Shown: positions 3,338 through 41,509, numbered from the stretch's first letter. The stretch: 64,000 bases of DNA from Trichoplax adhaerens (GCF_000150275.1 NW_002060946.1:2685454-2749453); one strand, 5' to 3'. Program-made: numbers and translations. The notes: generated from the sequence alone by a model not told the origin.

Positions 3338-3511
3338 GATGACTAACGTTGAAGATGGAAAGCAGCACGTCCGCGCGTTACTGGCTGCAAGCAAGCTCAA
3401 GCTTGTTATCAACAAACAATAGCCAATAAGGAGTGAAGTTGTTGGGGTGACGTAACATGCTACGAAATGATGTCAGTCAGCAAATACTGTACTGTACACC
3501 ATCGTCAGCAC

Positions 3512-8403: not shown

Positions 8404-9628
8404 CTGATCTCCTTATAATCACCAAAACGACAGGGAATGATTACAATATATGCCTCTACTTACTTCTACCTCGTCTCTTAATTTACAATGGAAAGATTTC
8501 ATGAGGCTTACGATATATTTTTAAGGACTGAAAGTAGTACTCGTAAAGTAAGCTGCTTCATAAATAAATATTACTTGTAATGAATCCTTTACAATTCATC
8601 ATGAAATTTCCGTAGTGTAACCAGTATAATTACCTACTTGGGTTTCAAATTCGTAGTGTAAACATTTGATTATTTTACACTATAAAGTATCGATGCTCTA
8701 AAGTTGATTGTACTCATTCATTTTTGCAAGTAACCGATGATTATGCCTGATTACTACAGTTATATAACTATTTTGTAACGTTCCCACGAATAGTAATGTA
8801 AAATTTTGAAACATGTATATTTTTTACCATGATACATACACGACTATGTATAGCTTGAGATTTAAAGTGGTAATAGACCAATAAGACCTTTATGCAGTTA
8901 TTGTGGATTAATGGGTTTCAGTTTGAGTAAACTCTGAATTGTTGAAGTAATGGTTCTAATAAATTATGCACCAAATAATCTTGAAATAATCTAAGAAAAC
9001 TTTTCAATGTTATTAGTTTTATTTTTATTTCACTCTTTTCTTGCATGTCAAATACAATACAGCAACACAAAAAGTAGATCGTAGTTACAAACATAACCTC
9101 GTCCATACTAATAAAAATTAATGAAGTATGACTTACAAGATGCTGCATGTCTCCTTATGTATATGCATTAATTTGCTGACAGCGTTTTGGTTACATTTTG
9201 CAGAGACATAAAACGCAGCTGTGAACGTCCGATAGTGAAATAGTCAGATTTTTACTAAAATTAATTTGACATTGCTTAATCACCAATTGCAAATCTAATT
9301 AACATTCGGAAAAATTGAACCGTAAATGTAGTAACCATAATTCAGGATGTTAAAGCTGCCAGCAAAATCAAAATATATTAATAGAGTAACATTAACTTCA
9401 CTATGCATAACTCGAAGATTGATAGCAGCAATATGTGCCATTGTAGACGAATAACTCAAACGATAGAAGTAACGCCTTGCGAAACTTTGTAACTAGCAGA
9501 ACAGCATAGTTAAGCGTACAATCTCTGACGCTCTACAAAAATTAAGCTGTTCTATACTGTAAATTATCATTGATAGTTTCCACCATATCAACATTTTACT
9601 ACGTTTGAGTTATCAACACAAAATTCTA

Positions 9629-14765: not shown

Positions 14766-16133
14766 CTATACATCGATATCTTCACCGAGAATATCATTTT
14801 TTCGCCCGTATAAATATTTTTCTGGAATGGCTGTTATAGGATTAAAGGATACTAACATCCAGCCTGCTATAGCCAGTATTCCTCGTAGTAAATTAATAAT
14901 TCTCCATGAAGAAAATAAGGTTTGGCTCTGAGTAGTTAATCTACGAACATTCTGATCCGTTACCGTTGGCCAGTAAAAAGATTGATTAACATTATATAAA
15001 CCGATACGATAATCAATTTCAGCGATACTAGTAGACAGTATTAAGCTTAAAATATGAATTAGGATACACAAGGCCAGCACTGGGTGGCGAATAAAGCGGG
15101 TGATTAATGATACATATTCATGACTTTCTAGGTCAAAACGGTCCATAACCGATACAGTAGCGATCGCTAGTAAGAAATAGTAAACCGATTGAGCGGCTTG
15201 AGAAAGCCTGTTGTAACAGGCCAGCACAGTGATAGTTCCATTAACTTGATTTTCAATGGTAGAAATGGATATTGTTTGCCATAAAGCAAAGCCTGCTAGT
15301 AGGCCTTCACAAAAAAATGCAATCTTCATAAAGATATTAAATACTGAAGAACCTAACTGGGCTGAATTAGTAATATTACTCATTTTACTTTTTAAAGCGT
15401 CGATATCTTTATCTTTTTTCATGTCATTTAGGTTACTCTTGTTTACTCTTCGGAATCCGCCGCCGTCTGTTCGCTCAACATAAACAACATTAAGAGGTTG
15501 ACTGGGAAGTGATGGGACTAAATTGGGCGGCTCGGTAATCTCTATATTATAGTCTTTAGATGTAATGACATCTTCTGGTGATAAATTAAGATCGTGATCG
15601 AAATCTGCCTCTGAGTAATGCGATACTGCCGCAGCCGATGTCAACTGGTAATCTTTTCTTTTTTTGCCTTTCTTCTTTCTTGATCTTTCTTCATTTTTAG
15701 TGGTATCTCCATCAACAACATCTGGATTACCAAAAGAATCATTCATTTTTAAACCATCTTTATTTTCATGATCGTCTGCCTGAACACTAGCACGAGAGCC
15801 GCTTTCCATGTACGAATTATCCGCCATTTGTTGACCCGTGGTTCGTTTTTTCTTCTTTTTTATTGATTTAGGAACTATTTTCTCTTGATCATCATGATCG
15901 CTAGCAAATGCAGTTTCACGTTCTACTAGTTTAGCCCTTTTCTCTTCCACATTCTTCTTACGTCGTGAATTAGTAGTTGCTTTAGGATCTTTTGTCACAT
16001 CATCAGTGTCTTCTTGCAAAGCTCTCTTCTTTCTTGTTTTCTTTGTTTCTGTTGTATCAATCATCTGAATTGCACTTGATTGCGGTTTGCGAATTTTCTT
16101 ACGTTGCCTTGAATTGCTATTATCGTCCGCCAT
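14766..16133 (-). CDS. TMEM237: Transmembrane protein 237 (ciliary transition zone), single coding exon, 455 aa
   Basis: Lys-rich disordered N-terminus, SQP..VYVE...GF motif, then four hydrophobic segments: IAFFCEGLLAGFALWQ...QSVYYFLLAIATVSVMDRFD...WRIINLLRGILAIAGWMLVS, matching the TMEM237 C-terminal domain. A probable 5'UTR intron lies at ~16221-16490. Confidence 0.88.
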   Translation of the reverse strand: MADDNSNSRQRKKIRKPQSSAIQMIDTTETKKTRKKRALQEDTDDVTKDPKATTNSRRKKNVEEKRAKLVERETAFASDHDDQEKIVPKSIKKKKKRTTGQQMADNSYMESGSRASVQADDHENKDGLKMNDSFGNPDVVDGDTTKNEERSRKKKGKKRKDYQLTSAAAVSHYSEADFDHDLNLSPEDVITSKDYNIEITEPPNLVPSLPSQPLNVVYVERTDGGGFRRVNKSNLNDMKKDKDIDALKSKMSNITNSAQLGSSVFNIFMKIAFFCEGLLAGFALWQTISISTIENQVNGTITVLACYNRLSQAAQSVYYFLLAIATVSVMDRFDLESHEYVSLITRFIRHPVLALCILIHILSLILSTSIAEIDYRIGLYNVNQSFYWPTVTDQNVRRLTTQSQTLFSSWRIINLLRGILAIAGWMLVSFNPITAIPEKYLYGRKNDILGEDIDV

Positions 16134-17324: not shown

Positions 17325-17470
17325 CGGTTGAGGAATTCGAATGGCATTATTACGCAAGCGCAAAGGAGCAGTCGGCAATCCATACTGGAGCTGTTAAGCG
17401 GTTGAGGAATTCGAATGGTATTATTACGCAAGCGCAAAGGAGCAGTTGGCAATCCATACTGGAGTCGTTA
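17325..17470. repeat. 74-bp tandem duplication
   Basis: CGGTTGAGGAATTCGAATGG.ATTATTACGCAAGCGCAAAGGAGCAGT.GGCAATCCATACTGGAG at 17325 and 17399. Confidence 0.9.
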
Positions 17471-23200: not shown

Positions 23201-26200
23201 GCTTAATTTTTTTGCATCTATTGGAAACAGCAACATTTCTTCTTTCGCCAGATTCACAACTATAACACCATCAACTGCAGCTGCAATTACCGCTAACTTC
23301 TAAAAGATGCGATTAGCGTACAATCATTGAATTACATGCTAATACAAAGAAGATTGAATTACGAGAAAATGATACCCGTAGCTTGATATTTTAAGTCACC
23401 AATAATTTTCTTTTCATGGTTGTAACGGTACAATGAGATAATTACTACATTATACCTAAATGTTTCAACAGTAGTCATGATAAATTAGCTGGCAAGATAT
23501 CCTGCTGTCTGAATTGGATTACTACGTGATAATCCTTGACGATGCTAAATGTTTTACTAACTTAAGCAAGCCAGGCTTCAATCTATAGCAGCAATATAAG
23601 TTTACGTTGATGATCTTATCAGTCTAATTGTCAAGCTTTAAAGAATGGCTTCACATACAGACTGAAAATACTATAAAATTGACGGCATTATGTAGAATCT
23701 TTCTACAACTGAAATATTATTAACTACTCAAATCCAGTCCCTTCGAATAAAATATATTGCCTCTATGTTGTTCTCGCTCACCAGTAGCTGCATATTTTGA
23801 GAGTATCCAAAATAAATTTGCTATTAATATAATCGATAGTTGAGAGCCAGTTAGTAGGCACCTACCGCTTCACTACATAGCATTTGAAGACGGAGGTAAT
23901 GATATACTTCATTGTTTTTTTGAGAATATTCTATAATAGGATTAAGGGATGAAATAGATGTGTAGTTCATTTTGTCCGTGGTTGGATTTCGTGTACTGTA
24001 ATGTGCACTTGCAGTATGCACATAAAATGCCAATGGCTAAATATTTCTAGATGTATCTTCATTGCTAATTTCTTGTGGAATATCGATTGATGGAGTCCAT
24101 TTGAATTAACATGTATATTTTATATAAGCACATACTGCTATCACAGCCATATTGACTTTTATGTGCATACAAAATACATAAGAATGGCTCATTTTGCAAG
24201 TCTTTTCATACTCATAGTGAGTAAGATTTAATTGGCATATTTTATTTATTCATTTTACTAAACCAATATGAGTAAATACACCATGATATTAATTTGTAAC
24301 TTTTTTATACATACGAGATAAATTAAGTACTCTCATGTTCGTAACCAGTCTATCTTCTTTCTGTTTACGATGAGTAAATCCCTGCTGTAATTTCGTGAGG
24401 AGTTACCTGACTCTCTTTACCTTCTATAATGCCATCACAAGCTTGATTAATTTGCTATGCAAGAGACTAATTCGTAGCTAGTTGTGCTAATCTAAACACG
24501 AATTAGAATATCTAATTACTGATCGTATGATCAACCTCAATCAACCAACACGTTTTATGTTATACAGTAGTGGCTATATTATATATTACCTAGGCTATTG
24601 TTTTTGTTTGATTATATTATTTTTAATTTGATTGTTGTTATATAACAGTCCATCGACGAATTAATCAAGGCATAAGTACAACACCCGCTAGTATGAGCTT
24701 CTTGTATATTTATTACCAATTGGAGATGATGGCATAGCTAGGTAAAACCCTTAAAACCGTTTAATTGTCTCTCTATCCATCTCTATTTTACCCTCTGTTT
24801 GCAATAGTTAAGAATAGATCATTGCGAAAAAAAAAGTCCACTTGTTTATAAACTACCAATTATTGCCACTATTGATGGCAGGTAGATTGTGCATATTCTG
24901 CAATCTGTATTATGCCTATTCTCGTTTTCTTGCTAATGTTTTGCTTATTAACATTTTTTTGTCTAACATGATAAATCATAGACTTTTTCACACTATTGTA
25001 TAATGACATTAATATTAAGATTAATTTCTTTAGCATATTTACGCTTCACTGTTTGTGATCACTGATAATCAACTTGGTTACTCCCTTAATCTAAAAGTCG
25101 AAAACGCTTCATTATAATTATTAATTGTGATCTTCCCTTACTACTTTCTAGTAGTTCATTTAAATTAGCCATCTTTTATCGATAGATTAGATAATAGCTC
25201 TAACTCTCCGATTAATATAATTATTTTACATTTAATAATTATAATCGCACATGACTTGCTATCGTTCCCGCTATCGTCTGCCATAATGATCATCTATTCT
25301 TAATCGGTAGTTTAATAGATCTAAATGCAATAGTTCAAATTTAAATTGAATCCAATCTATAATAAGAGAGGTTGTATGAATTATATTATTGCCCAGTAAT
25401 AAAATTGTAATCAGCATTAAATTTCAACATTTACTGATGGCATTAATTTCACTAAATACTATCATTAGTCACTTTACGTAGAGAGGAGAAAATGGAGTAT
25501 AAAATGAAGAAAATAATCGCGGTACTAGGGATATTCTGCATTATCTAATAGACATTGTCAATTTAAATATATGTGCATAAACAATAGCCAAAGACAAGGG
25601 GTATAATTAGAGCCACCACTTTTCCATCCATAGGGAGGAGCTCCTTTTAGTATCCAAATCAATGCACATGAGACGAATTCTTAATTATTTTTTATTTCAA
25701 TATCTTGACCTTTCCAACGATTTTAATCCAATCCAATATAAGGACATACTGTAGAGTTGATGTTGGCTATTTTTTTAAAGTCTTGAAGGCTAATACCCCA
25801 TTTTAAAATAAGTTTCTACAAAAATTGAATACAATTTTGCCATCAACAGTATCCGTTAGCACCAATGTCAAAAGGAGACTGCCTTTTCACATGATACAAA
25901 TCATCGTATTGACCACTATAGTATTGGACAATAGCCTATTGATATATAGGAAAAAGTATGTACAGTATTTGCATTTAATTAAAATTCCTCTTTAATTTAA
26001 TATTGAAATCTGTTCCGTATTATGATCGTTTTATTTTTAGTAGCAATTGTCTTAAAAATTTTCTTGATCCAATCAAACTTCTATCGCCTCTAATTATACC
26101 TTACATTACTGCTCTACTGTACTCATATGGTTATTAAGAAGAAGAATATTTCTTGGTATCTCTTAACTAGACAACTATAGCTCTAGCAATATTACATCGG

Positions 26201-26240
26201 TACTGATGTCAGATTTTAATCTTTACTTTTCTTAACTTAG

Positions 26241-29200
26241 ACGAGATCGTTTCGACAACATTATCATCACCAGAGCTGATCGAATGGAGTGATCCATATG
26301 AAGTGGTATTGGTTAGGACAGCCACTGATACAAAGTTGGGATTTTATATCAGCAGTTCGAAGGTAAGTTGAGAATGAACTACAATAAAAATGCTGTATCA
26401 AAGCGTTGGAGTTCTTCCTAGTCAACTTATTTTAGTCAAGCTTAGATTCGATAAACTTTTCTAAGGGTAATATTGCATCGCCTTCTTTATTTTATTTATG
26501 AATACACTTAACGGTATAACCGTACTACGAATTATTTACTATTAAAAATCGAACATACGATGTTGTATGGTGTAAAATCTAACGATGAGTGCTGTAAAAA
26601 GATTACCAACAACTGAAATGGGATACAGATTTTAATTTTGCTATACGAATTCTATTAGTCAATACTTGAAGATTAGATTTTTAGCGATTATTTGCCGTTA
26701 AGTTATATCAAATATTGTTTTGTAAGACATACAGGGCATAAATATTATCGTTTTAGAGGAAATCTTGGCTATTTGTTTTATAATTTCGATTTACGTTCGA
26801 TTGGCTCAATTTAAAGTTTAGTATTCAAACTGGGTGCTATAGTTGCGATTTGTCATCCGTTAAAAACAGCTTGGTCTTTACATAATCTTCTCGAAATATT
26901 TTTATAGTTCATTTAACTTGCATATTTTTATGTTACTTTCAATATTATCCATTTACGTCTCACAATATTCGAATTTGAGTTAGAAGGCCATGAGGAATGT
27001 GAAACATGTTCATAATTCCATTAATAATATAAAATGATTTGAGTTTAGCTTTTGGCTGTATCAATTTACTCGGTTGTGTTATACATCTGTATTCACAAGT
27101 ATAAACGTTATATAGAAAACAAGTTTCTTTAAATTCTACATAAATTCCTTTTTTCGAGGATTGAGAGTTGAGACTAAGCTTAGTGGTGAATTTCTTTATT
27201 ATACTGTTTACGCCGATCAGGATCTTAAAGTTTTGAGTTAAAGCTAGGGAAGTAAAACTGAACTAAATTAATCGAAGGAATTGAATCCATTTATATTTCC
27301 TTAATAAAAGAATTGATTCATTACCAACTAACGTATTGAAGGAAAGATTAAAACACGGTAAAGATATATCTTCTTAATACAGTCATGTACGCATGAACGA
27401 AATATGTCAGTTTTAATAGGATAAGAATAAGATGCAATGAAGAAAGGCGTATATTCAGTAATCCGATTTTTTTGCTTAGTCGAATGCATTATTCTCGGCA
27501 TGGAATCCACCAAAGGCACACCATATTCAGTGATAATCTTAGTAGTATAGGGCAGGGATACAGGTAATACTAAAAGGTTATTGTTTTATTTTATCCTATT
27601 TAATTTCCTATTTTTCTTCCCTTAATTACCCAAATTGGATTATAAGAATGTTTTAGTGAATTATTACTAATAAAAATGTTGTATGATCACATCATTTTGT
27701 TTTTGATGCTAGTTCATCAAGTTAATGTATAAGGTTAGATGCACTAAAACTTTCAAGCATCGTTTCCCAGGCATAGATTCTTGTATACTGCACTATAATT
27801 TAGCCATACCATCTGCCATAGAATGTGCCGTTCGAATGTTCTAAATTCTTACTGAATTATAACTAAAATTCTGATAAAATATATCAGAACTGACTTAGTT
27901 TAAGGCGTCATCCAGAGAATGGTACAAAAGATATACTTTTAAAGATCTTGAAATCTTACTTCTGCGATAGGTTATGAGTCATAGAAAGACGATTTGGATG
28001 TTTTCGATATAAACTTCTTTTATATTTATTCTACTTTTGTAACACTTTCGCTACTTAATTTCGATTTAATTATTATTAAAGAATAAACTGTAAAGCCATC
28101 GCCGGATGAAGAAGTTATATTTATCAAATTACTTTTATCACTTATGCTACGATAACGATATGGCTATATTCATGAGAATGAACGTGGCACTTTTATGAAC
28201 TTTCAGTTAACTTAATAGGAATTCTCAGAAGTCAAATTATAAGCAGTACATCACTAGAGGTATTTTCTATAGATTCTAGTGGGACTAAAGTTAAAATTGA
28301 ATCAACGTAGACAGGCATTATTCTACATATCCTAAATTTCAACGTAACTCCTTTGCATGCAAAAAGGTCAAGTTTAAAATTATTTTGTGGAGTATAACAC
28401 TTATTGAACTTGTAACAGCTTATTATTGCTTCCTATAACACTTACTACAGTTCTTAACTCATTTTTATTGGTAAGAAAGGTTCTAGCACTATAATAGTAT
28501 GTATTAAGTTAGGATATGAGAATCAATCTCCAATATCAAGGAAGTAGAAGATATCTATACTTCATCTTGATATTGTACTAGGTTATATTTTATATATTCT
28601 CCAAAATCGGTGATAACATTACGATTTAAGAAGGGAGTGAGACAGATCGAGGCGGCCAAAATTATTGCTAGGTTGAAATATCTTTGCAATAAAACTTCCA
28701 AGGAAAGAAATCATTCGTCTAAGTAAAATTTTTTATTTCTTTAATTGAGTGAGTTATTAATACACGCGACTAAGACATCACGTATTTATCGGAATTGACG
28801 AAAACTAAGTTATAACACTAATGTATGACAAACATTGGCCTTCTATTTCTATTAGATCTGTCTAAATTTCATTTGAATTTTATTGTAGCATCACTCTTGT
28901 CAATAAATTAGAAACCGTACAATTTATCGTTGACTTGAGATGTATCTTCAAACTTTGCTATTCTATGGTCTTCAACGAATAAAAAAATATAGTTACTGTA
29001 CTGCTATGACAAGCAATTGCTAAATGTTGTAGAATTCAATTTCTATAACTATTACTATAAAATTTGAAAAGTAAATTGAAATTGGACAAATTTATCATAT
29101 AATCTGAGTCATGTTTTACTTTATTGGTCGTCAGAATACACAGCGGTATTTATTTTACACGAAATTGTAGTGTCCAATTATAAATAGGATTTAATATCGA

Positions 29201-32200
29201 CTAGCAAATAAATACAGCTGGTCACCGTAATGTGGCGAGTACGAGTTATTTCATTTATTATTAACAAAATGATAAAATGCTGATTATGTGGTTCGAAAAT
29301 TTTGCTTCTCTTTGATGCATTTGGAACTAAGTTTATTCCATATACTTTGTTAGCTATCGTATTATATAATTTATTGGATGGTAAAACATTTGTTTCATTC
29401 GCTATGGATCTTGTGCAAATAATAATATGAAAGTTATTCTCGCTGAGAGAGGACTGCTTAAAGCAACTAAGTCTGATAATAATACTAGTCTTAGCTAAAT
29501 GTTTCATAGTAATCTACTGCAAAGGTTATAAAGTAGATTTTGAAATATCTTTTCCAGAATCAGTACCTATAAAATTAAGATCATTTGATTAAATTATTTT
29601 GGTATTTGTAATAAATTAGTAATAATTTTATTGACTATTAGGAAATTGCTAATTTCCCATTGAATACGAGTTAAAAGATTTAATTTGATATGCAAAGTGT
29701 ATGATTTTGGGTTAAGGACTGAAATGTTTTATAAAAATATTATGATATAAGTTTCTTTTTTCTGTATTTGCTCAAATCAAAATTCAAATATGGGGATTAC
29801 TAAGGGTCCGAAGTTTTGACCGAACAAACAGATTCCTTAATGCTGCCTAAGTTATCATGTTATCGTGCAATTTGTTATATAGTCTTTAAGCTTAGTAGGC
29901 CAGCTATACAATTCTTAGATATAATTCTTTAATACGGATAATCTACTGACTACGGCAAGCTTCATCTACTATATTACTTTCATGATGATTCAGAATCATT
30001 GCTTTATCATTAATGTGCTCGGATTATCGTCTTAATTCGTAGTAGTACCATGAATGTATGATTTTAAAAATATATTAACACGGCATCGTCTTTTTATTGA
30101 CAATATAGCACCCAATTCGATCTGAGGAAACTTATACAATTATCAATAACATCAAATCGGATAGTATTGCAGATCGTGAACCTGGTCTATTAGTTGGTTG
30201 TCGCATTCTCGCTGTTAATCAAATACATTTGATTGGCAAAAGTTTAGATGAAGCTTATCGTACACTAGCATCATCTCCACCAGAGAATCCACTAATTTTA
30301 TGTCTAGCTAAACCTTTATATCTTCGACCAGGACTATCTATATCAACACCTCACCGATACAGCTTTGGTAATCGCTCCCCTCCATCTCAAATTACTAAAT
30401 TTTTATCCGTTCAAGCACAACGTCGACGAGTAAATTCTTGCGGAGAAGAATACCAACGAAATCGTCATATTATGGAAATGGAGAATAACGCCCCCAGTAA
30501 TCAGAATAATGGTAACAATTCACGATATCATGATTCCCATTCTCAATCAACAACTGCCTCCGGTGTCTCTGGCCCCAGAAAATATTCGCCACCATCAGAT
30601 GCAACTATTTCAGAAAGATCCGGCTATAATCATGCTTCTAATGCAAATCAAGCTAATTATCCTGAACATCCGACATCATATCATCGACATAGCGAAGTCG
30701 ACGGAAGTTATGGACCAACTAACAGCAATGATAACCAAAGTAATAATAATAAATGGCGTGGTAGTAGCGCTGTTTCACAATCAAATTTTGTCAATAATGA
30801 AAATGCTAATACTTCCGCTAATTCATATAATGTTTCTCGTGGGCCTATTGGACGCAATGTTCCCGTACCACCTGTACGCCAAAGTGGTAAAGTTGCTCGA
30901 GTCTCAATTGGTGGTTCAGTATCTAGAGTAACTGTTCCGACGTTAAATGATCGTCAGCGATCAGTTAGTGCGACAGAACTAACCAAAGGCGTTGTTAATT
31001 CTGCCAGCAATAGTAATCCTCCAACGGTTACAACGAGTCGTACGGTTGTTACTAAAGGCCCACATGGCAATAAGGCTGTTGCTAGTCGATCAGTTTCGAC
31101 GTCTGCTATAGCACTTGGCAGTAATGGACAAGCTAAAACGAGCATTACTGTTAAAACAGGCCACAGACATACGATGAATACAGTTGTGGATATGCCCCCT
31201 AAAGTAGTTCGACAACATAAGCAATATCTTCCGGTTACTGGAGGCACTACATTGGTTAAATCCAATGAAGGAGAAATTAACGATCGAGCTAGTGGAAACA
31301 TAGTAACTACGGCAAAAAATCAAATTTCCATTAATATGAGAAAGAATATCAGTAGTACAAGTAATAATGACAGTCAATCAGGGGCCTATGGCCCAAAGCA
31401 AAGTTCTGGAAGAATTGTTATTTCAACTTCTAAGCGAACTGTTATTAATAAGAGAAAAAGTGATCCAAATGAAAGAGGCCAGCCTAAAGTAACCACGAAT
31501 GAGGGCTCTAGGTCAGCAACGCCGACACCAACTCATGACAAAAGCAAAGGTTTTGCGCTGGGATCAGGAGCACAACCGCAAGAAGAGGACTCTAGTGATT
31601 CTTTGAACTACCCTACAGCATGGAGGCAAAATACAAAAACAATTAAATTAGAATCTAGTCGAAGCGATGAACCTTTAGGAATTGATGTCCAAGTTATTGA
31701 CGTAAGTATTAGCTAATTCAATAGAAGAAAGAGATTTGTTATAGTTTTATGATCGTGTGTGTGATGAGTTGTTATATTCTTGGGAGCGTATTAATCATCG
31801 TTGTTACTGTATCACGTATTTATACATCAATAGGATCCTGAAAATCATGGGCATTCTTGCACTATTGTTACCAAGTTGGCCAGTAACAGTATTACAACTC
31901 GGGCTAAAGTAATCTCAGTTTATGATCGATTAGTATCAATCAATGATCTAAGTCTGGAAGATATACCATCGCAAAGTGCAGATGAAATTATTAAAACTGC
32001 AGGTAGAGGAACATGGAAACTAGTGATGCGACAAGTGCTAACTAACCAAGAAAAAGATGCCAAAGAAGTAAAGTCTATGGATTCTACTAGAGTTGAAGAA
32101 ACAATACAAGGTTAGCTTGTCATATACATGTTGTACAACTTGTACGGAAGTAGATGACCGAGTGTAATTGAGCAATGTTAGACGATGCTACCCAATAAAA

Positions 32201-33326
32201 CTGTTACACCAATTTTAAATTGAAATTAAGCTCTAGAATATTTATAACCAATGATAATATAATTAATTAATCAAGCTGTTATATGTTTTTCTTTCTGATA
32301 TCATTAGCTGAAAGTGCTCTAGTTGCTGAAGGAATTATCACCTTAGACGACAATGAAGATAAATTGTCGGAAATACGCCGATTAGCAGTAACGGATCCGC
32401 ATCAAATTATATGGTCAAGTTCTACTGAAACGATCGATGTGGCCAAAATTGATAACCGTTTAGGTTGCAAAATTGTTCCTAAAAAGGTGCAAACTTTTAT
32501 CAAGAATCCTATAGTAGTTTCAATTGTTGTTAATTTCCTTTAGTTGACTTTAACACAGTATTAGAAGGAAGTGCGGAGCAGTAAACGACGACGGTGAAAT
32601 AATATTTAATTTCATCATTATTATAATTCTTTTAGCGTCCTAACAATCCTTCAAGCAATGACATGATTATACAAAATATTGTGAGCGGCAGTAGTGTTGA
32701 TAGAGATGGTCGGATACACCCTGGTGATCTTTTAGTGGCAATTAATAATGTTTCATTAGAAGAGAAATCCTCCATTGAAACTACAAAATTAATTGAGGAA
32801 TCACCTTCCGAGCAGTTTATCCGACTAACATTCAAGAAGCCAATCGATATAAGAGGTTATGGACAAGAAGAGAAATCAACTTATATAGAAGATGCAGAAC
32901 CAGGTGTCGCTAAATTACCGGATCAATTATTTGATACCGTTGGGGCTGAAGAATCCCTTTCGAATTTGGCCGAAAGATCAGATGAGAGATCAGTATCAAC
33001 AGAGTCATCCAAGGCTGTAACTCAAGATTCTATAGCTACACCTGAATTGAGGATTATTCCAGATACCCCTCAATCAGGAACTTCTGGCGATTTCAATACA
33101 GCATTTGCTAATGCTTCATTGCAACGTCTCCACTCTCCATCTTCACTACCTGTTATCATTAATAGTGATGCTGGAGATAGGGGGAAAAGTGATGATCCAA
33201 TTTTTATCAAACCGAAATCTCCTGCAGTGGCGGCTGGAAATCAACACAAAGTAGATCAGCCAAAGCCTCATCATACTGAGACCAAGGAAGTTTTACCAAG
33301 TATTATCGAAATAAAAGATATATCAG
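26241..33326 (+). CDS. Multi-PDZ region (three MPDZ/PATJ-like PDZ domains with a long S/N/T-rich linker); predicted 5' half of a PDZ-Roco gene; start exon unresolved
   Basis: Exons 26241-26362, 30109-31701, 31834-32110, 32308-32486, 32636-33326 join in frame. PDZ1: WSDPYEVVLVRTATDTKLGFYISSSK|HPI...GLLVGCRILAVNQ...AKPL. PDZ2: TIKLESSRSDEPLGIDVQVID|DPE...YDRLVSIND. PDZ3: IDVAKIDNRLGCKIVPKK|...GSSVDRDGRIHPGDLLVAINNVSLE. Candidate start exon ATGGCAG|gt at 24875-24881. The last exon ends at a phase-1 donor (TCAG|gtaag). Confidence 0.82.
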
Positions 33327-34879
33327 GTAAGCAATTTACTAGCTTTACTAGGCGATATAGTGTTGTACTATAGTACCCGTATATCGGAGGCTAAAAACGT
33401 TACTCAATTAACGCTAATCTGATCACATGCTAACGTCCTCCGTAATCAATATTCTACAACAAAATAGTCAAGTTGAATATCAATTTTTGACTAGAATGGT
33501 GAAGTTCTCTTGATATCACCTAGCAGTAAAACTTTAAAACACTGCATTTACTAAGTCCGAGGATATCTTTACGCTGAATCATTTTTGTACTTGATGTTTA
33601 TTGGGTTGAATTTTCCATTGATTATTACAACGGAGTCTACCGCATTTATTACTGTTCCAAATGGAAATTTGTAAAACACAGAAAACTAACACTCTATGAG
33701 CCTCTTGTCATTTACCTGCAGTATTACTCTAAATACTGACAATCTCCTATCGTCAGGACGAACAGTAACAGCCCTAGTCTCTCATTTAAATTACACAAAC
33801 CTAAACTTCATTGAAAAGCTAGTCAATTTATAGAATAGAAAACGTCCATAAACATTTTAGCTATCCGTGTACAGTACAGTAATGACAATAGATAGTGCTA
33901 TACATACAGTACAATTATGCAGTTATCTATTATTAAAAATATGTAAAGCGTCATAGATAAATTAATGTAAACACATTCCCAGATAAGTTATCTAATCCTT
34001 GGCATTTTCCCTTTGACTGGTTCATAATTAATTCATTCATTATACAGTACTGTATATATATAACCTATATACTGTATTATTAACGTTTCATTAATAATTT
34101 CTAATTTGTACTGGCGACATCTACGTATATTTTGGGCATTATTTTATAGAACTTTGCTATCAAATTTGTAGAGAATTTGTATTCATACATTGCATTATTG
34201 CAATGACTAAAATATCTTTCTCGGAAGCATCAACATTGATCCGTAGTTGGTGAACAACGCTTGATTGTTGTTGACGATCGCTGCAGTATTCAACAATCTT
34301 TTTATTACGTATCAAGATTTATTTTATTTAATGCTTAATTATTGACCGGCAGTATAGCAAAGTAGTGAAAAAAAGCCCCGGCACAGTATGTCGTCTCTAC
34401 CCCCGTAAATACACCCTTTCAAGCACTGCGGAGGCTTGACTCCATAGGGTTATCGGGTACGCTGCAGTCATAGACCTCTGGTAGTTTGTCTTGTACTTTG
34501 TCTCGTCTCCAAGGACTTTAGTGGCATCCATTTCTACTCTATTTCCTACTAGTAGGTGGCCACACTGTATAGAATAAGTTAAGTATGGAAAACAGTTTCA
34601 AGGCATGGAGGATTGTAAAGTGCAGACAGTATATTACAGTATATTCTAGATCTTCTATACAGAAGAGTAATGAATCCGCACTTCAAAGGATTGCGCGGGT
34701 CACAGAAGAAAGGAACGAACATTCACTAGTGACGCTGCGCTTCAGTTTTGTTGACGACCGCCGCCGTAACTCAACACTAACTTCCACTCACCCTCACTGC
34801 ACGCGTAGCGTTGACAACGTGCACATTCTTCAGTGAAAAAAATTTTCAACTGCCAAGATTTGCAGTAGACATCTTGGAT

Positions 34880-35205
34880 ATTTTTTTTTGCTGGCATCAT
34901 TTCCTTTTGCCTTTCCTTTGAAATATCTGTAGAAAACTAATTCAATATTCTGAGTTTACTGGACGATTGATCATACGATGGCTTTGGATAGATAGTAGTG
35001 AAGTAAAAAGTGTTTTCTTGATAGTATCCATTGGTAGAGTCTTTGACAAGATCACTTTTTGCTAGCATCTTTTCCTTTGAAATATCTTGTCTTTGTAACA
35101 AGCCAATTGAATATTCTTAATTTACTTTAACGATGGATCACGTTATCACTTTGCAGAGATTGTACTATAGTAAAGTAAAAAGGACTTGATAGTATCTTCG
35201 GTCGA
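34880..35205. repeat. Diverged two-copy tandem duplication (~170 bp) in the intron before the Roc exon
   Basis: TTTTTGCT.GCATC.TTTCCTTT...GAAATATCT...AATATTCT...TTTACT...AAGTAAAAAG...CTTGATAGTATC occurs twice (~34885, ~35056). Confidence 0.65.
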
Positions 35206-35659
35206 GTGATTGAATTTAGGCGTAGACGAACAAATTAGAGAATCTGCTGCTTATAGTAGGCATTTCTATCTTATAATCAATTTTTGGGTCGTCCGCCAGA
35301 AAGCCAAAGTAGAGATGTTGTGGTATTTTTAGTTATTAACCTGTAAAGTAATCAATCTATTTGCAAAAATGGACGTATTCGACGAGCATTGTTCATAATT
35401 CTATATGTACTACTGCAGTAAGGAATAAGTATTTTACACAACGCTAAAAAGTTCACAAGGTATTTCACATACAAGACTAACATCATTCAGCGATATTTTT
35501 ATACGACACTTGAGTTCAGCGTAGAGTACCCAGCGTATCTGTAGCAATGTAATGAACGACAGTGAAAGAGTCTGTAGATCCTTGCAACACTGAATATTTG
35601 TGTGGTTTAGCAACGTACGCATACTTTAAACTAAACTATCTTTTCAATATTTTTTCAAT

Positions 35660-38600
35660 ATGGCAGAAGAATCATTAGCAAAGAGCCTATTAATCGAAGA
35701 AGCCTTTTATACCGCTTTAGCCAATGGCAACGTCAAAGCTAGCCGAGCACGTTGTTTATTCCTTGGCGATAAAAATAGCGGCAAAAGTTCACTCTTTCGT
35801 GTTTTAAGCGGTCAAATGTCCAAGGTAATGCGTAAAATGTCATTAATATCGGATGCAGACGATGCCATGACTTCCGATGGTATTCTTGCTCGAACAAGAT
35901 CAGATTCACTACTACCTCCTGGACTAGATGCACTAATGGATAGTGCAGGTGAAAGTGATGAAGTTTTTAGAGATGATATTCCATTGCGTCCACAACGCCG
36001 ATCTTCTTTTATCCGAAGTAGTAATCAACAAGGTTGGTCACCTAATAATTCAATAAGCAGTGAATCTGGCAGTACAAGCGGTAATCAAGCTAGCGGCTCA
36101 TCATCGAATCCACAGTTGAGTGATTTTGATCGCCATGCTGGCAAATTGATTGCTCACGCCTTAAAACAACTTTATTTTCGAAATACTAATAAATCTAAAT
36201 TAGCGGAATGCTCCACTTGGGATAAACGTATTCCTTACGATAGCGTTGTTAGCTATCTTAAATCAACATCATCAACAGTTACGGAAGATTTGAACTCGAC
36301 TGCACGCTTGCGTTTAGATTTTTGGGATATATCTGGCCATAAATTAACACGTAGTGTTCATCATGTACACTTAGCTAAATTTGGTGTTAATTTAATTGTA
36401 TTCAATGCCGTGAGTATGTTGGCACAAGAAGAGAAACAATTACAAAGTTTACATTACTGGTTAAACTCGATACGTACATATACAACTCCCACAACACCTG
36501 TTCTACTAGTTGGTACTCACGGCGATGAATTATCATCCGATGACATTAAGAATATCAATAGGCAATTAAATAAACATTTTATGCAATCATTTGGTGGACA
36601 GATAGCTCGTAGTAGCTACGATTCAGTAATGTTTTTAGTAGAATCACAGCACGGAATTAAAGATGAAGGGGCTGCTAGATTATTGGAGAAAATGTTCGAT
36701 TGCGCCAGGAGACAAGAATATTCCACTCATGCAATCCCACTAAGTTGGGTTATGTTCCGTGAACAATTAACACGATTGCATAAAGAACACAATATTCGAT
36801 GTGTAACTGTCAGCTCGCTTAGGAAATTAGCAAGACAAGTTTGCAATATCACATCAGAACAAGAGCAAACTCAAGTCTTGGAATATTTACATCACGGACG
36901 AAAAATTATCTATCCAGGTATGTTATAACAATAACTTTTCATAACATTTTAACTGAGTTTTTTAGTAGTGATATTTATTAATAAAGTAGCTCGATTTGCT
37001 AGCATTCCATACTATAACTAGGGTAGAAGCTGTAGTTTGTACTCATACTCCACCAAAAGTACAATACTGTACACTAAATTATATTTTTTGAATAGTTAAC
37101 AGTACATTCTTTAAATACTCTTGTATTACTTGTTTATTCAGTTATCGTTTGTGATATCAAGACCAAAGTGTAATTACTGTAATAGTTCAGATTTTACATT
37201 AACATTTCTTTACAGACTGCAATCAGTTGAAAATTACTTTCGTCTTGTTAGTTTTTGTATCATATAAACATCATTTCTAGGATACTCTATAGCTAACTTT
37301 AGGTATAATTATTATTTTTATGAAAATAATAAATAAATATAATATCCTATCTCAGAACATCAAAAAAAGATACGCGTCTACTCGTATACTATTATATTGA
37401 CTATATTTATTCCATGGCAGGCATAAGATTTATTTGCGTAATTTCGTCCTTGATCATTTTTTTTCCAATAGGGATACTTCACGGTGTTAAAAAAGATCAT
37501 GTGATTCTGAATACTTTTGTCATCATTGATACACAATGTGTCTTGGAAGCAATTACTGCGTTGATCTATCAACCAAGCCATTGTAAAGAAACTAAGCACT
37601 TTCAACACAAATGGGAGAGATTGACTAATTATGCTGTAGTCGACACTGATTTAATGTTACATGCATGGAAAAATTCCAAAGAACCAAGCGAAGTATTAGT
37701 CAGTTTGATGGAAGCACTGCATATTATTTATCGAATTGATGATAACTGTGATTTTTTGACATCGCACCTTAAAGAAAAGAAAACTTTACAAGAATTTGAT
37801 AGTAAACGACCTGGCTTATTTTCTAGCATGAAGCCAGCGCGATTTATTATGCCATATTTACTTAAAAATCAAATGGATGAAAGTTTCTGGGAGGTTTCAT
37901 TAGATGATATTTCGTTCTATTTTGATTTCCATGGTTTCCTACCTCAGCCAATATTTATGTACACCATAATTGATATAATGTCTCAACGTGGTAAGAATGC
38001 TTCGTTAACGACAACGATATGCCAGACTGGAGGAATTTTCTCGTTATTTGATGATATCTATCATTTCAATTTACAACTTTATGCGGAAAAATGCCAATTT
38101 AAAATTACTGCAAGGTAAGTATTAGGCATTATACTTGTATCCTGATTATTGGTTCTCTTTATCTAATCTTTTTTAGCATGTTACGGTAATAATTAGATAA
38201 TGGAATAGTATCTTAAAAGACTTCTTAAATTATTCTTCAAGGTGTAAAGAAGGCTACTCAGCATGGTATTTGATGAATGAGCTCAATGTCATGGTTAAGA
38301 ATATTTGCGACAAGCACTTTCCAGATGTATTTTATCATTGTGGACCTGCGTGCCCAATGGATCGTTGTTTATCTGCTGATCAAGCATTTAATCGCGTTCA
38401 TGTGTTAAAGGTCGATTTCTTGAATCCTAACGCTGCTCTACAATGCGGACAAATTAGGGTCGATGAACATCCTCACGTAAAAGAATGGCTACCAGATGAT
38501 AATATCGAGGTAGGCACTCGATAGTTATTTACGTAATCTTTACTAAATTGTTGCGGTTGCAATACTGCTTGCTAAATTCAATTAAAATTAAATTATGAAG

Positions 38601-39087
38601 ATACTGTATATCGTAGTATCATAATCTATTTGTATTTTATATTTAGCAAGATATTCGTAGATGTACGCCTATATTCAAATATAATTTACATCTAAATTAT
38701 AGGAAAATTCTTGAAAACAATTTTATTAACGGTATATACTATTAATTTTAGGCAACTATTGCCGCGTTAAAAGATCGCAAGAATGAACAGTCTCTGGATA
38801 ATCATATTGATCATTTATCACAAAGTACACACGATGAATTATGCCGTTTGTTAAATCAACATACGCCATCAGTTAAAGACTGGCGATGGCTTGCGCTTGA
38901 ATTAATGGAGATTACAACACAACAGTTGGTACGCTTCAAACTACAAGACAGTCCCAGTAGTAGCCTATTAGCTGAATGGGGTAAAAAATCTCATAGCACT
39001 GTCCAATTGTTAATCAAAAAGCTTCAAGACATCAAGCGAGATGATTGCGTTCAGATTCTATCGCAATGGATCGAGAATCATTTCTAA
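35660..39087 (+). CDS. Roco-family region: Roc GTPase - COR - C-terminal Death domain
   Basis: Exons 35667(or ATG 35660)-36917, 37472-38114, 38242-38509, 38752-39087. G1 LFLGDKNSGKSSL, G3 LDFWDISGH, YWLNSI, G4 VLLVGTHGD. COR start IPLSW...LEYLH..RKIIY...VIIDTQ. Death domain KDWRWLALEL...SPSSSLLAEWGK..STVQLLIKKLQDIKRDDCVQIL. Confidence 0.88.
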
Positions 39088-41509
39088 TATCGATAAAAAA
39101 TTTTAATGTAGATTACGTATCAATCTTTGAAAAAATATATGATTGACGAATAGAGATAGACTCTATTTTTTGTTATGCTTACAATATAGTAGAATCGCAT
39201 TATAATATCAAAAATTATGGTAAACGGCAGCACACTCATCCGAAACTGAATAGCATAACATTTTTAAAAGATGATATGATGCAGAAACAGGTTCCTGACG
39301 CATAATACACTAGTAAAATTTGATAGTAATGTAACATAGCACTGGATTGAGACGGTATAATAAAATATTTTGCCATTTTGATTACGTTCAATTACATTCT
39401 AGTAATTAGAATTATTTTGATTTCTTATCTATTTTTTATTAGTTATTGTATGACATCTTTACCGCTCATATAGTAATGAAAATCTTTTGGATTTACTATT
39501 TGATAGTTTGTTGTATTGTAATAAAGATATAGCCATATACGATATACGACTCGTATATACGAGTAAGTGTATAGGTGGATTAAACATAAGGCATCCACGT
39601 ATAGATATTTTATGACAGCTATGTGCGAAGTTCATATCGTTGATAAAATATTCTCCAAAATACTTCGTGGATCAATTTTTACGAACTTGTGATTTCGGTA
39701 TATCCACGCTCATGCACTTAGTGCATCATTTGTTACAATATTTTTTCGTTCATTGTGGTTTTACTGTTTTAATTGTAACTGTACTTGTTTTACTGCTTCT
39801 TAATGGTGACTATGTAAATTTTGTTGCAAGCTCGATAACATGGTACATAACTATTAATGGAAGGATCGATGATGGCTTCCGTATTTGTAATGGATAATTA
39901 TATGTGTTGCTAATTTCTTAGGATAGTTATCCTGGATGTAATGCGGTATTAATTACTTGATTACAGTATCACTGCAGTGACGTAATTATGGTAATTAATT
40001 TAAACTATCTGCATTTTAAATTATAGTTTTTCGCATCAATGTTGAATATATTCATTAGTCTCTTAAGACTGTCACATCCGAAGCTACTTGATTATTTTTC
40101 GCTGCTACTTCATTAGCATTATGCCAGTTTCTTAGAGCTGATCATAATGTAGTAGGCTAATAAAGTAGGATTTGTGCTATATTAATAAGATCAAATTTTT
40201 AATTACCATGCCGCAAATAAGTAGATAAGGTTGGATTCTTGCAATTGCTTCCCTAACTACAATGACTACAGTAGTTACAAGTAAATCATTAAGTTTGAAA
40301 TCATATAAAAATGATTTTTTATTCTACTATCCTATCAAAATCTCTGGCTAATTAGCCTATGTAAAATAAAAGAATTATCATTTTATAAATCAATTGATCA
40401 ATAATTAGTGTTACAGTAATTGACCATAGCTGTTAGTTTTATTAGATTTGATAAAACGTTTCGGCAAGTTAGGTATCAGTAAAAATTTTAATTTAAACTG
40501 CGATACTTTAGTTACGAATACAAGTACGATCTCCTAATGTTGAATATGATTACGAATTTAAGGCAGTTAGCTAAAATGAAAAGGTAATCTGTGGAAAGAA
40601 TCATACTATTTTATTCATCATTGAATCCGATTATAGTTTGTGTACTGTAAGTTCGGTATTTTATTGTAATTTTACAAGATGTTGATCGTCAATTACTGGT
40701 CAACATTGTAGTTGTTATACTTTTATTTTTGAAATACAGACTGAATAATAATATAATAATTACAATATCTTGAGGTAAAATATGAAACATGTTTAGTCCA
40801 ATTCTTTCCATTACCATTAGTATGCAATGATAATTTTGAACTCATAAAAATTCTTTTATAATATAAAAATATGATTTATCAAATGTTACGGCATTGTCTA
40901 GGATATACTCATGATTAATAAAATATGATATTTAATTATAGGATATTCGATTCATGCAAATTTCTCCATCATTAAATATTAAGTTTTCATTAACACAAAA
41001 AAGGAAATACTTTCCAACTAGTTTCATCGTATGCCATCATATACTAAAATCTTCCTACATTGAGTTAAGTCATATTTTGCAGTGAAAATCAGTTTACTGA
41101 CGTAGGAAAAACCAGTTAATAATGTTTATAAATACATCCGCTTGACATTCCGCTTCGGTCGAAGGATGTGGGACTCCAAGATATAATAGCATCCTGTATA
41201 TAATTTTACATGATGTTTATATTGCTAGCTGTACATTGAAGCCTGCCAAAAGGAGACTAGCATCTATAGCTTTATTGTGCTACAGAAACAGTTAGGTAGC
41301 CCACTTTATTACGTACTAGATAACTATGGAAAGAATAGCACATCATAGTCCAATTGGCGCTGATAAATAAATAATATATTAGATATGTATTTTGATGGCC
41401 ATCCCATTCATACAGGTATAATACAACTGTATCTACTACTTCAGTTTCATGGAATAAATTTTTAATATTAAGACTTTGGCAGTTCTAAAGGCAATGACGA
41501 TCTTCCATA

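Follow-up and report, generated by a model that had tools for sequence, protein, structure and literature searches.

A Trichoplax gene that splices three PDZ domains to a Roc-COR-Death module

Human DAPK1, a Roco protein, carries an N-terminal interaction module ahead of its Roc domain and has the C-terminal order Roc-COR-Death, and Pfam describes Roc as a 'domain of DAPkinase'. A second arrangement is found in the CARMA or CARD-MAGUK proteins (the CARD11 family), which have an N-terminal CARD followed by coiled-coil, PDZ, SH3 and GUK domains, and contain no GTPase. Here we describe a locus of Trichoplax adhaerens in a window of 64,000 nucleotides (GCF_000150275.1 NW_002060946.1:2685454-2749453), this being the whole stretch of DNA analysed, with positions counted from its first letter. 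The predicted product resembles DAPK1 both in the C-terminal order Roc-COR-Death and in having an interaction module N-terminal of Roc. However, the kinase, calmodulin-binding segment and ankyrin repeats of DAPK1 were not found, and three PDZ domains are present instead. Pfam searches of the nine exons, from exon 1 onwards, gave no match to a kinase family or to Ank in any of them, and the ankyrin ORFs of related loci matched nothing in the window.

The likeness to the CARD11 family is one of functional analogy only, in that a death-fold adaptor and a PDZ-type scaffold are combined in one membrane-proximal polypeptide; the CARD11 proteins have a CARD rather than a Death domain and lack the GTPase, and homology is limited to the individual domains. 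With LRRK2, LRRK1, MFHAS1 and the prokaryotic Roco proteins of C. tepidum and M. barkeri, the Trichoplax protein appears, from structural models, to share the fold of the Roc-COR tandem. In contrast to these proteins it has no LRR, ARM, ANK, kinase or WD40 domain, and the Death domain is its only recognisable output.

Structure of the gene

An earlier note on this DNA had placed nine exons between 26241 and 39087. Recomputation from the window sequence reproduced its exons, splice sites and phases, giving a chain of 5,360 nt with no internal stops and with AG acceptors and GT donors at all exons. The acceptor and donor phases of exons 1 to 9 are 1/0, 0/0, 0/1, 1/0, 0/1, 1/1, 1/2, 2/0 and 0/stop, and the product is 1,786 aa once an upstream exon supplies one nucleotide. 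The features of the locus are as follows.

24875-24881, plus strand: proposed first coding exon, ATGGCAG/gt, a candidate chosen by sequence pattern
26241-26362, plus strand: exon 1; acceptor in phase 1, donor in phase 0; N-terminal half of PDZ1, including the KLGF loop, as read from the sequence
30109-31701, plus strand: exon 2; C-terminal half of PDZ1, Ser/Asn/Thr-rich linker of about 445 aa, N-terminal half of PDZ2 (PLGI loop)
31834-32110, plus strand: exon 3; C-terminal half of PDZ2; donor in phase 1
32308-32486, plus strand: exon 4; linker plus N-terminal half of PDZ3, with the RLGC loop
32636-33326, plus strand: exon 5; C-terminal half of PDZ3, linker of about 170 aa; ends at phase-1 donor G/gtaagc
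33327-35666, plus strand: intron 5; 2,340 nt, GT..AG
35667-36917, plus strand: exon 6; both ends in phase 1; Roc G domain bearing a disordered insert of about 150 aa, start of COR-A
37472-38114, plus strand: exon 7; remainder of COR-A, first portion of COR-B
38242-38509, plus strand: exon 8; C-terminal portion of the COR region, Cys-rich linker
38752-39087, plus strand: exon 9; Death domain; stop codon 39085-39087
39088-40470, plus strand: probable long 3′ UTR, approximate end

The boundary between the two halves of the gene lies at intron 5. The exon 5 donor reads GAT ATA TCA G/gtaagc and ends at 33326, the exon 6 acceptor reads caatatggcag/AA GAA TCA and begins at 35667, and both are in phase 1. 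The predicted protein is at least 1,786 aa long and comprises a short N-terminus, PDZ1, the disordered linker of about 445 aa, PDZ2, PDZ3, the second linker, Roc, COR and Death.

Exon 1 contains no in-frame ATG, and an in-frame stop is read 36 nt upstream of it. An RNA contig reaches about 223 nt past exon 1, as judged from contig-length arithmetic, which does not give the position of this RNA in the genome. At least 223 nt of mRNA thus lie upstream of exon 1, which implies one or more 5′ exons. At the other end one RNA contig (record 15) runs about 1,385 nt past the stop codon by the same arithmetic, if collinear. No ORF-bearing neighbour was found in 39088-40470, and AATAAA sites are present at 40159 and 40365.

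RNA across the joint between the PDZ and Roc exons

The earlier note had predicted a single gene for three PDZ domains, Roc, COR and Death, and had named RNA across 33326^35667 as its check and the lack of such RNA as grounds for abandoning it. Spliced contigs with this GT..AG joint were found in three of the four runs compared (X5, X8 and X4), which come from three independent studies under two organism labels. Two control joints, 32486^32636 and 36917^37472, were seen in the same three runs. Run X5 is RNA on record, X8 and X4 are guessed to be RNA, and the fourth run, X13, showed even cover with none of the three joints and so behaves like DNA. One X8 contig (record 22; 3,111 nt) starts about 2.2 kb upstream, crosses exons 4 and 5 and enters exon 6, thereby holding PDZ exons and the joint together. 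Read-through past the exon 5 donor was confined to low-depth contigs, and the single-gene prediction therefore stands.

Further joints were read from loose contig ends, each in three runs: that at 32306 reads the end of exon 3, confirming the joint 32110^32308, and that at 38116 reads the start of exon 8. The joints between exons 1 and 2, 2 and 3, and 8 and 9 are predicted from splice signals and phase, from the continuity of the domains and from contig-length arithmetic, the RNA comparison having stopped short of the joint between exons 8 and 9. The contigs carry no strand and cannot place all nine exons on one molecule.

It is very improbable that the central joint is an artefact of short-read assembly, or a processed DNA copy, with no real mRNA junction behind it. 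The contigs bearing the joint reach only 27-30 letters into exon 6, where a rule of thumb asks for 31, and the RNA nature of X8 and X4 is, as stated, a guess. The short exon 6 side is attributed to, though not proven to result from, branching of the contig graph at 35693, the point at which the unspliced path comes in. Against an artefact, the joint skips 2340 nt, its ends are exactly GT..AG and fall on the predicted, phase-compatible sites, and the letters that could belong to either side number only 3. It was repeated in three studies that differ in SNPs, two further canonical splice joints occur on the same contigs, and all three joints are missing from the DNA-like run. Moreover, only one genomic locus holds exon 6, and the joints are therefore not accounted for by a processed copy.

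An alternative in which the mRNA is real but minor would divide the locus into two units, a PDZ-only protein ending in a retained intron (stop 33371-33373) and an 834-aa Roc-COR-Death protein made from an internal promoter (ATG 35660), with the fusion as a read-through (conjoined) transcript of minor significance. Unspliced contigs do cross the exon 5 donor (33297-33755 in X4, 33297-33886 in X5). The last 0.9-1.3 kb of intron 5, from about 34393, is likewise present in unspliced RNA contigs that enter exon 6 (34393-35693, 34799-35693 and 35204-35693, in three runs), whereas RNA cover of its initial kilobase is slight or absent. The ATG at 35660 is in frame just 5′ of the exon 6 acceptor and is preceded by an in-frame stop at 35627, and a patch richer in G+C (34300-34900) is single-copy in the genome. 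We nevertheless consider this division of the locus unlikely. Word depth per RNA run, a rough measure when taken from contigs, was 41-101 for the joint-bearing contig, near that of the flanking exons (41-125) and far above that of the unspliced paths (5-16). The unspliced leader contains 5-10 ATGs upstream of 35660, so translation from that codon is poorly favoured, and in the relatives this place holds an acceptor in phase 1 and no start codon. Searches of intron 5 found no tRNA and no Rfam family reaching the gathering score.

The locus is thus one placozoan protein-coding gene, in whose main mRNA five exons encoding PDZ domains are joined by splicing to four that encode Roc, COR and Death. 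The minor unspliced RNA may be an internal-start form encoding Roc-COR-Death, and such a short form is possible as a minor isoform beside the fusion.

Domains of the predicted protein

Each PDZ domain is split by an intron, and since exons were scored singly, PDZ1 and PDZ2 were scored as half domains and fall below the Pfam cut-off. The half in exon 2 covers Pfam profile positions 25-71 with 14.7 bits, and that in exon 3 scores 18.2 bits and matches PDZ chains of DLG4 and GRIP in the PDB; exon 1 is too short for a Pfam score. The PDZ3 half in exon 5 exceeds the cut-off (2.7e-07; 31.3 bits against 23.2), and the PDZ1 and PDZ2 halves are 35% identical to it. The carboxylate-binding loops of the form x-Phi-G-Phi (KLGF, PLGI and RLGC) close the preceding exons, and all three units were assigned as PDZ domains on this basis. 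Exon 2 as a whole gave no homologues. The earlier label 'MPDZ/PATJ-type' proved not to be specific, because the best solved matches of the PDZ3 half are DLG4, INADL, DLG1 and DVL, with INADL not the best and GRIP also matched. MPDZ and PATJ moreover combine L27 with 8-13 PDZ domains, whereas here there are only three and no L27.

Exon 6 matched the Roc profile PF08477 at 4.5e-12 (46.7 bits, cut-off 27), which places the protein among the Roco family, and its best PDB sequence match was the Roc domain of LRRK2. The AlphaFold model of this exon has a pLDDT of 74.8, rising above 90 in the G-domain core, and its top Foldseek matches (M. barkeri Roco2 RocCOR, LRRK1, C. tepidum Roco and LRRK2) are all Roco proteins. 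COR-A is split between exons 6 and 7 (17 and 14 bits), each piece being under the Pfam cut-off. The piece in exon 7 covers profile positions 60-138, and phmmer aligns this exon with the post-Roc region of homologues that have strong COR-A matches. The exon 7 model (pLDDT 82.6) has C. tepidum COR, 3dpt, as its best Foldseek match (E 1.5e-04, TM 0.54). COR therefore follows Roc immediately on its C-terminal side within one polypeptide, exons 6 and 7 being connected by the RNA joint 36917^37472.

Alignments identified a P-loop (GDKNSGKS), the switch-I Thr (MTSDG), DISG as DxxG, and GTHGD in place of LRRK2 THLD, so that a THxD-like G4 motif is common to LRRK2 and the Trichoplax protein. The nucleotide-binding motifs of Roc are kept, and GTP binding is predicted. 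In distinction from LRRK2, a His stands at the position of R1398 (Ras Q61), and the disordered insert of about 150 aa follows switch I. The insert could be taken to mean that the GTPase is a dead scaffold that no longer cycles nucleotide, leaving the product of a genuine fusion mRNA as a PDZ-Death adaptor. Neither the DxxG region (DISGH) nor G4 (THGD) is canonical, and Pfam Roc was matched only at profile positions 43-119, with the P-loop matched separately. However, the P-loop GxxxxGKS, the switch-I Thr and the Asp and Gly of DxxG are all retained, G4 of LRRK2 is itself THLD, and the modelled G-domain core is confident. The insert and the His occur throughout the subfamily, which argues for conservation and not decay. 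Loss of GTPase function thus seems quite unlikely to us.

Exon 9 matched the Death profile PF00531 at 1.7e-13 (51 bits) over positions 2-85 of 86, and is thus a Death domain proper rather than a CARD, DED or PYD. Its nearest solved Death domains are those of p75NTR, MyD88 and NRADD, and its homologues include the Death domains at the C-termini of proteins from Ptychodera and Lingula.

Relatives, origin and proposed function

The closest relatives are uncharacterised proteins of Asterias amurensis, Ptychodera flava and Lingula anatina, together with three marine metagenome loci (L001-L003). They show 25-30% identity to the Roc exon by alignment, and 31-34% over matched stretches. These relatives share with the Trichoplax protein the G-domain insert, the WDFAGH-type motif and a C-terminal Death domain, and the introns flanking their Roc exon agree with those described here in position and phase (both phase 1). 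Their Roc ORFs end at the same '...PG' as exon 6 and have phase-1 acceptors. Death ORFs lie downstream of Roc in all three metagenome loci, and exon 8 has collinear tblastn matches in each. L001 and L003 have ankyrin ORFs upstream of Roc, the L002 contig having no upstream flank. The N-termini of the relatives differ from that of the Trichoplax protein; they comprise ankyrin repeats (accompanied in L001 by a zinc-finger-like stretch), a second Ras-like domain or sequence with no assigned domain, and no PDZ was seen in them.

PDZ was also missing from the Pfam families listed for the 150 nearest Roc homologues (for 64 of the 150, among the first 25 families listed), and no report of PDZ combined with Roco was found in the Roco literature searched. 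No fewer than 17 ROCO genes are catalogued for Trichoplax adhaerens, with TPR, AAA, MBT, SH3, LRR, CARD, TIR, death and Ras-like domains as partners and PDZ not listed (Civiero et al. 2014, PMC4104024). The present gene shares with that repertoire the theme of Roc-COR amid shuffled adaptor domains, including death and CARD, and adds a partner absent from the list. The architecture is thus as unusual as had been suggested from the sequence, and PDZ-Roc-COR-Death is a real, expressed and new domain combination in an already diverse placozoan Roco family. The Trichoplax reference models of multi-domain genes have been noted to be incomplete (Kamm et al. 2019), so an older model of this locus may have been split; the protein searches listed no entries from this genome.

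The PDZ block is flanked on both sides by phase-1 introns. It may have been inserted into an old phase-1 intron, which, in those distant relatives with sequence available upstream of Roc, follows an ankyrin-repeat exon (and, at one locus, a zinc-finger-like stretch). The phase-1 boundaries and the intron position would fit exon shuffling of a phase 1-1 cassette.

By analogy with the established behaviour of Roco proteins and of PDZ and Death domains, the Roc-COR tandem would act as a nucleotide-dependent switch of conformation and dimerisation. The three PDZ domains, on long flexible linkers, would dock the protein on the C-terminal tails of membrane or cortical proteins, and the C-terminal Death domain would recruit further death-fold proteins. 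The GTP/GDP state of this membrane-scaffolded complex might then gate a Death-domain signalling platform that has no kinase output. We infer that the protein may be a PDZ-tethered, kinase-less GTPase switch signalling through its Death domain, possibly as a junction or immune sensor. Taken as a whole, the explanation that combines a single gene, a GTPase core, a PDZ-docked Roc-COR switch with Death output and a cassette origin is in our judgement quite probable. Trichoplax, a simple animal, would thus have joined three PDZ docking domains to a Roc-COR switch of the LRRK2/DAPK1 type and a Death domain in one spliced gene.

Structure and expression of the gene

The sequence from 24.8 to 40.2 kb was read for the gene model, and the model of the earlier note, in which three PDZ domains precede Roc, COR and Death domains in a single gene, was recomputed; its exon coordinates and arithmetic proved exact. 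The window is AT-rich (30-39% G+C), with eukaryotic intron-exon structure, and the exons are as follows.

Exons of the PDZ-Roc-COR-Death gene (PDZ part, exons 1-5; Roc-COR-Death part, exons 6-9)
26241-26362, + strand: exon 1, AG/GT boundaries, phase-compatible
30109-31701, + strand: exon 2, AG/GT boundaries, phase-compatible
31834-32110, + strand: exon 3, AG/GT boundaries, phase-compatible
32308-32486, + strand: exon 4, AG/GT boundaries, phase-compatible
32636-33326, + strand: exon 5, AG/GT boundaries, phase-compatible
35667-36917, + strand: exon 6, AG/GT boundaries, phase-compatible
37472-38114, + strand: exon 7, AG/GT boundaries, phase-compatible
38242-38509, + strand: exon 8, AG/GT boundaries, phase-compatible
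38752-39087, + strand: exon 9, AG acceptor, phase-compatible, stop codon at 39085-39087

Joined, these exons give an open frame of 5,360 nt with no internal stop and, counting one nucleotide from an upstream exon, a predicted protein of 1,786 residues.

Logan contigs of four sequencing runs from four studies were compared with positions 32200-38150. One run (X5) is on record as RNA under organism label B, and two others (X8 and X4) carry organism label A. The GT..AG joints 32486^32636, 33326^35667 and 36917^37472 were present in these three runs. The fourth run, X13, covered introns and exons evenly and contained no joints; it behaves like DNA and was used as the control. The loose contig end at 32306 carries sequence from the end of exon 3, and the one at 38116 sequence from the start of exon 8. 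The 33326^35667 joint, which links the PDZ exons to the Roc exon and skips 2340 nt, falls exactly at the predicted phase-compatible sites, with only three letters fitting both sides. One 3,111-nt contig of X8 comprises about 2.2 kb of upstream mRNA, exons 4 and 5 and 30 letters of exon 6.

In each of the three runs only 27-30 letters cover the joint on its exon-6 side, where the rule of thumb asks for 31. Joint contigs and unspliced intron contigs (starting at 34393, 34799 and 35204) all end at 35693, which we read as a branch of the assembly graph at that position, where two RNA forms have exon 6 in common. Exon 6 is single-copy in the genome (assembly of 105.6 Mb in 1,414 contigs), which excludes a processed DNA copy as the origin of the joint, and SNPs differ among the three joint-bearing runs. 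The junction is therefore considered real, and the proposal that PDZ and Roc exons belong to one gene is borne out. Word depth, a rough measure only, was 41-101 on the joint path, about 15-16 on the unspliced path into exon 6 and 0-9 for read-through of the exon-5 donor; the fused PDZ-Roc-COR-Death mRNA thus looks to be the main form. The gene is real and expressed.

The evidence for the joints between exons 1 and 2, 2 and 3, and 8 and 9 consists of splice signals, phase, the continuity of domains and the lengths of contigs. A 3′ UTR of some 1.4 kb is suggested by one contig. Upstream of exon 1, which lacks an in-frame ATG, a stop in the same frame is reached after 36 nt. The X8 contig is about 223 nt longer than exons 1-3 account for, indicating at least one additional 5′ exon. 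No such exon was found, nor any further PDZ-like or homologue-like coding piece across the window, and no convincing ORF between 16.2 and 26.2 kb; ATGGCAG|gt at 24875, proposed in the earlier note as a putative first coding exon, is a guess. No protein of this genome, nor a near-identical one, was returned by a representative search, a word-indexed search (no match at all to exon 2) or exact look-ups of four ORFs of the window.

Several other features were observed in the window. The upstream neighbour, on the opposite strand, is a homologue of TMEM237, a family of ciliary transition-zone proteins.

Neighbouring features
2822-3415, - strand: ORF with an O6-methylguanine DNA methyltransferase DNA-binding domain (5e-27)
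6211-6840, + strand: ORF with a GTSE1 N-terminal domain (6.8e-12)
14766-16133, - strand: TMEM237 homologue, uninterrupted ORF of 455 aa (Pfam 3.9e-79)
17325-17464: 74-nt unit repeated 1.9 times, 96% identity
18014-18092: ACTGT microsatellite, the source of long spurious ORFs on both strands (17.6-18.3 kb)

The intron between exons 5 and 6 (intron 5, 33327-35666) also gives rise to RNA. Unspliced contigs (34393-35693) cover its last 0.9-1.3 kb and enter exon 6 in the three RNA runs, and its first kilobase has little or no RNA cover in the same runs. This is the reverse of the pattern that nascent pre-mRNA would be expected to produce. It suggests that transcription starts internally, close to a G+C-richer patch at 34.3-34.9 kb, or that the intron is partly retained; the intron contigs carry no strand information. 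An in-frame ATG lies at 35660, with an in-frame stop upstream at 35627, and unspliced RNA could encode from this ATG a putative Roc-COR-Death protein of 834 aa. The unspliced leader before it contains 5-10 upstream ATGs, and the short form is a possible minor isoform.

The patch at 34300-34900 is unique in the genome, and was rejected as a genomic repeat because it is single-copy. No tRNA and no Rfam family at gathering score was found. The only Rfam match, to a plastid psbA 3′ UTR motif at 35002-35074 (+), stayed below threshold (31.7 bits; gathering score 55.8) and was taken as chance. Intron 5 further contains a tandem duplication with imperfect copies of about 160 nt (34885-35046 and 35056-35213). 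The copies share 70% identity and give a local score of 79, where shuffles reach at most 26; neither Tandem Repeats Finder nor a second repeat search detected them. A direct repeat of 31 nt, at 34258 and 34738, is also present.

Domains of the predicted protein

Domain searches were run on single exons, and the PDZ domains, which are split by introns, and the COR domain were accordingly scored piecewise, never whole. In Pfam, the PDZ half-domains in exons 2 and 3 scored 14.7 and 18.2 bits against a cut-off of 23.2, which the half-domain in exon 5 exceeds with 31.3 bits. Each of the three PDZ domains is split at the same place by a phase-0 intron, and the exon before each split ends in the carboxylate-binding-loop strand (KLGF, PLGI and RLGC). 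Their C-terminal halves are about 35% identical to one another, as expected if a two-exon PDZ unit had been duplicated in tandem. PDZ3 is, by its sequence, a canonical PDZ domain. The solved structures nearest to it are PDZ domains of DLG4, INADL, DLG1 and dishevelled, and a specific affinity with MPDZ/PATJ, the type named in the earlier note, is unsupported.

The Roc domain in exon 6 was matched by Pfam at 4.5e-12. An AlphaFold model of the exon, made with 61 homologues as input, has a mean pLDDT of 74.8, above 90 in the G-domain core and below 50 at residues 81-157, and matches M. barkeri Roco2 RocCOR, LRRK1, C. tepidum Roco and LRRK2 before any small GTPase. Exon 6 also contains the first 50 positions of COR-A, and exon 7 positions 60-138 (Pfam). 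The exon 7 model (pLDDT 82.6) has as its best match the C. tepidum COR domain 3dpt (E 1.5e-04, TM 0.54, 205 columns). Since the models and profiles of the two exons match Roc and COR, the Roc-COR tandem, the defining Roco trait, is present. The Death domain in exon 9 (Pfam 1.7e-13) is nearest, among solved structures, to those of p75NTR, MyD88 and NRADD. All defining features having been found on testing, the gene product is a member of the Roco family.

Aligned Roc motifs comprise the P-loop GDKNSGKS, the switch-I Thr, DISG for DxxG, and, at G4, GTHGD (THLD in LRRK2). The Roc domain looks competent for nucleotide binding, as judged from these motifs. A Ser-rich insert of about 150 aa after switch I occurs throughout the subfamily and is disordered in the model. 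In the alignment of the Roc exon with its relatives, His directly follows DxxG across the subfamily (WDFAGH), here as DISGH (36320-36330, exon 6). LRRK2 differs in having R1398 (Ras Q61) at this position, and the human R1398H variant, which one abstract calls protective, changes the same site. The PDB chain that exon 6 matches best by sequence comes from LRRK2 Roc and carries His at the R1398 position; PDB sequence matches of Roc are not uniform at the equivalent residue.

Relatives and origin of the PDZ block

In the alignment, exon 6 shares 25-30% identity with its best relatives; the top matches reach 31-34% over matched stretches. The top relatives are exon-sized ORFs on eukaryotic marine metagenome contigs. 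In three of these (L001, L002 and L003), COR-like ORFs and a Death ORF lie downstream of Roc, collinear with exons 6-8. Two contigs have an ankyrin ORF upstream.

Ankyrin ORFs upstream of the Roc ORF
7911-8615: contig L001
6329-6700: contig L003

A zinc-finger-like stretch in front of ankyrin in the L001 ORF was recognised by eye from its Cys/His pattern, and L002 spans just about 1.1 kb upstream of its Roc ORF. The annotated relatives come from Asterias amurensis, Ptychodera flava and Lingula anatina; they are uncharacterised, measure about 1,050-1,090 aa and end in Roc-COR-Death.

The Roc ORFs of the relatives terminate at '...PG' exactly as exon 6 does, and their Roc exon has a phase-1 acceptor a few codons ahead of the conserved PYEV... 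helix, as in Trichoplax. Because boundaries and phase are the same, the two phase-1 introns flanking the Roc exon are old. The PDZ block starts and ends in phase 1, forming a symmetric 1-1 cassette, and occupies the old phase-1 intron position where the relatives have ankyrin exons. Such an arrangement is the expected signature of exon shuffling, by which we infer that the PDZ block was probably acquired.

Among the families listed for the 150 best Roc homologues (25 listed families for 64 of the 150), the partners were COR, TIR, Death, LRR, Ank, WD40, caspase and nucleoporin autopeptidase; PDZ occurred in none. A Protein Atlas search gave only generic Roc/COR clusters, none of them bearing PDZ. 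At least 17 ROCO genes are known from Trichoplax adhaerens (Civiero et al. 2014, PMC4104024; echoed in PMC11378527); their shuffled partners are TPR, AAA, MBT, SH3, LRR, CARD, TIR, death and Ras-like; PDZ is absent from this list (PMC4104024). The architecture is thus unusual, as the earlier note had held, and the gene extends an already known domain-shuffling pattern. No description of a PDZ-Roco fusion was found in the papers retrieved for PDZ with Roco or Roc-COR, which deal with the LRRK2-dishevelled interaction or with bacterial conflict systems, and no mention of PDZ or Roc was found in a placozoan immunity paper and its supplements. Trichoplax reference gene models are incomplete for multi-domain genes (Kamm et al. 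2019), which may explain why the architecture was overlooked.

DAPK1 shares the Roc-COR-Death order but has a kinase and ankyrin repeats, both of which the Trichoplax gene lacks. For this reason, on the grounds of architecture, the gene was not classed as an orthologue of DAPK1.

Possible function and significance

Roc-COR tandems are switches whose conformation and dimerisation depend on the nucleotide, the ligands of PDZ domains are short C-terminal tails of membrane and cortical proteins, and Death domains form homotypic oligomers. The protein is best read as a scaffold-anchored GTPase switch controlling death-fold recruitment: the three PDZ domains, on long flexible linkers, would provide the scaffold anchor for the Roc-COR switch, which would govern recruitment of death-fold partners without a kinase. 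Junctions, receptors, immunity and cell death are candidate settings among which the sequence does not discriminate. A more specific role, as a guard-type sensor of the integrity of epithelial junctions or receptor tails in this early-branching animal, is unlikely. There, the three PDZ domains would keep the protein on membrane-protein C-termini; if these tails were lost or modified, as after wounding or through a pathogen, the Roc-COR GTPase would switch and the freed Death domain would nucleate a death-fold signalling complex. On this reading a PDZ-less isoform, made from an internal promoter, could serve as a soluble regulator. If true, this would be a kinase-free, NLR-like use of the Roco switch, and PDZ polarity scaffolds and death-fold signalling would already be directly coupled in placozoans.

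The Roco proteins LRRK2, LRRK1, DAPK1 and MFHAS1 are relevant to cell death and to Parkinson's and bone disease. It is debated how inputs and outputs connect to the Roc-COR switch, and Trichoplax is known as a natural collection of Roco architectures. The gene is of interest to specialists in Roco proteins and early-animal signalling; it settles no long-standing question, and its function is a matter of inference. It adds a case, supported by RNA, where a PDZ scaffold module forms the input and a Death domain the sole recognisable output, with no kinase, and so offers a simple system in which to ask whether Roc-COR alone gates death-fold assembly. With its old phase-1 introns and an upstream module that differs between lineages, it also provides what is probably a concrete example of exon shuffling in early animal signalling proteins.
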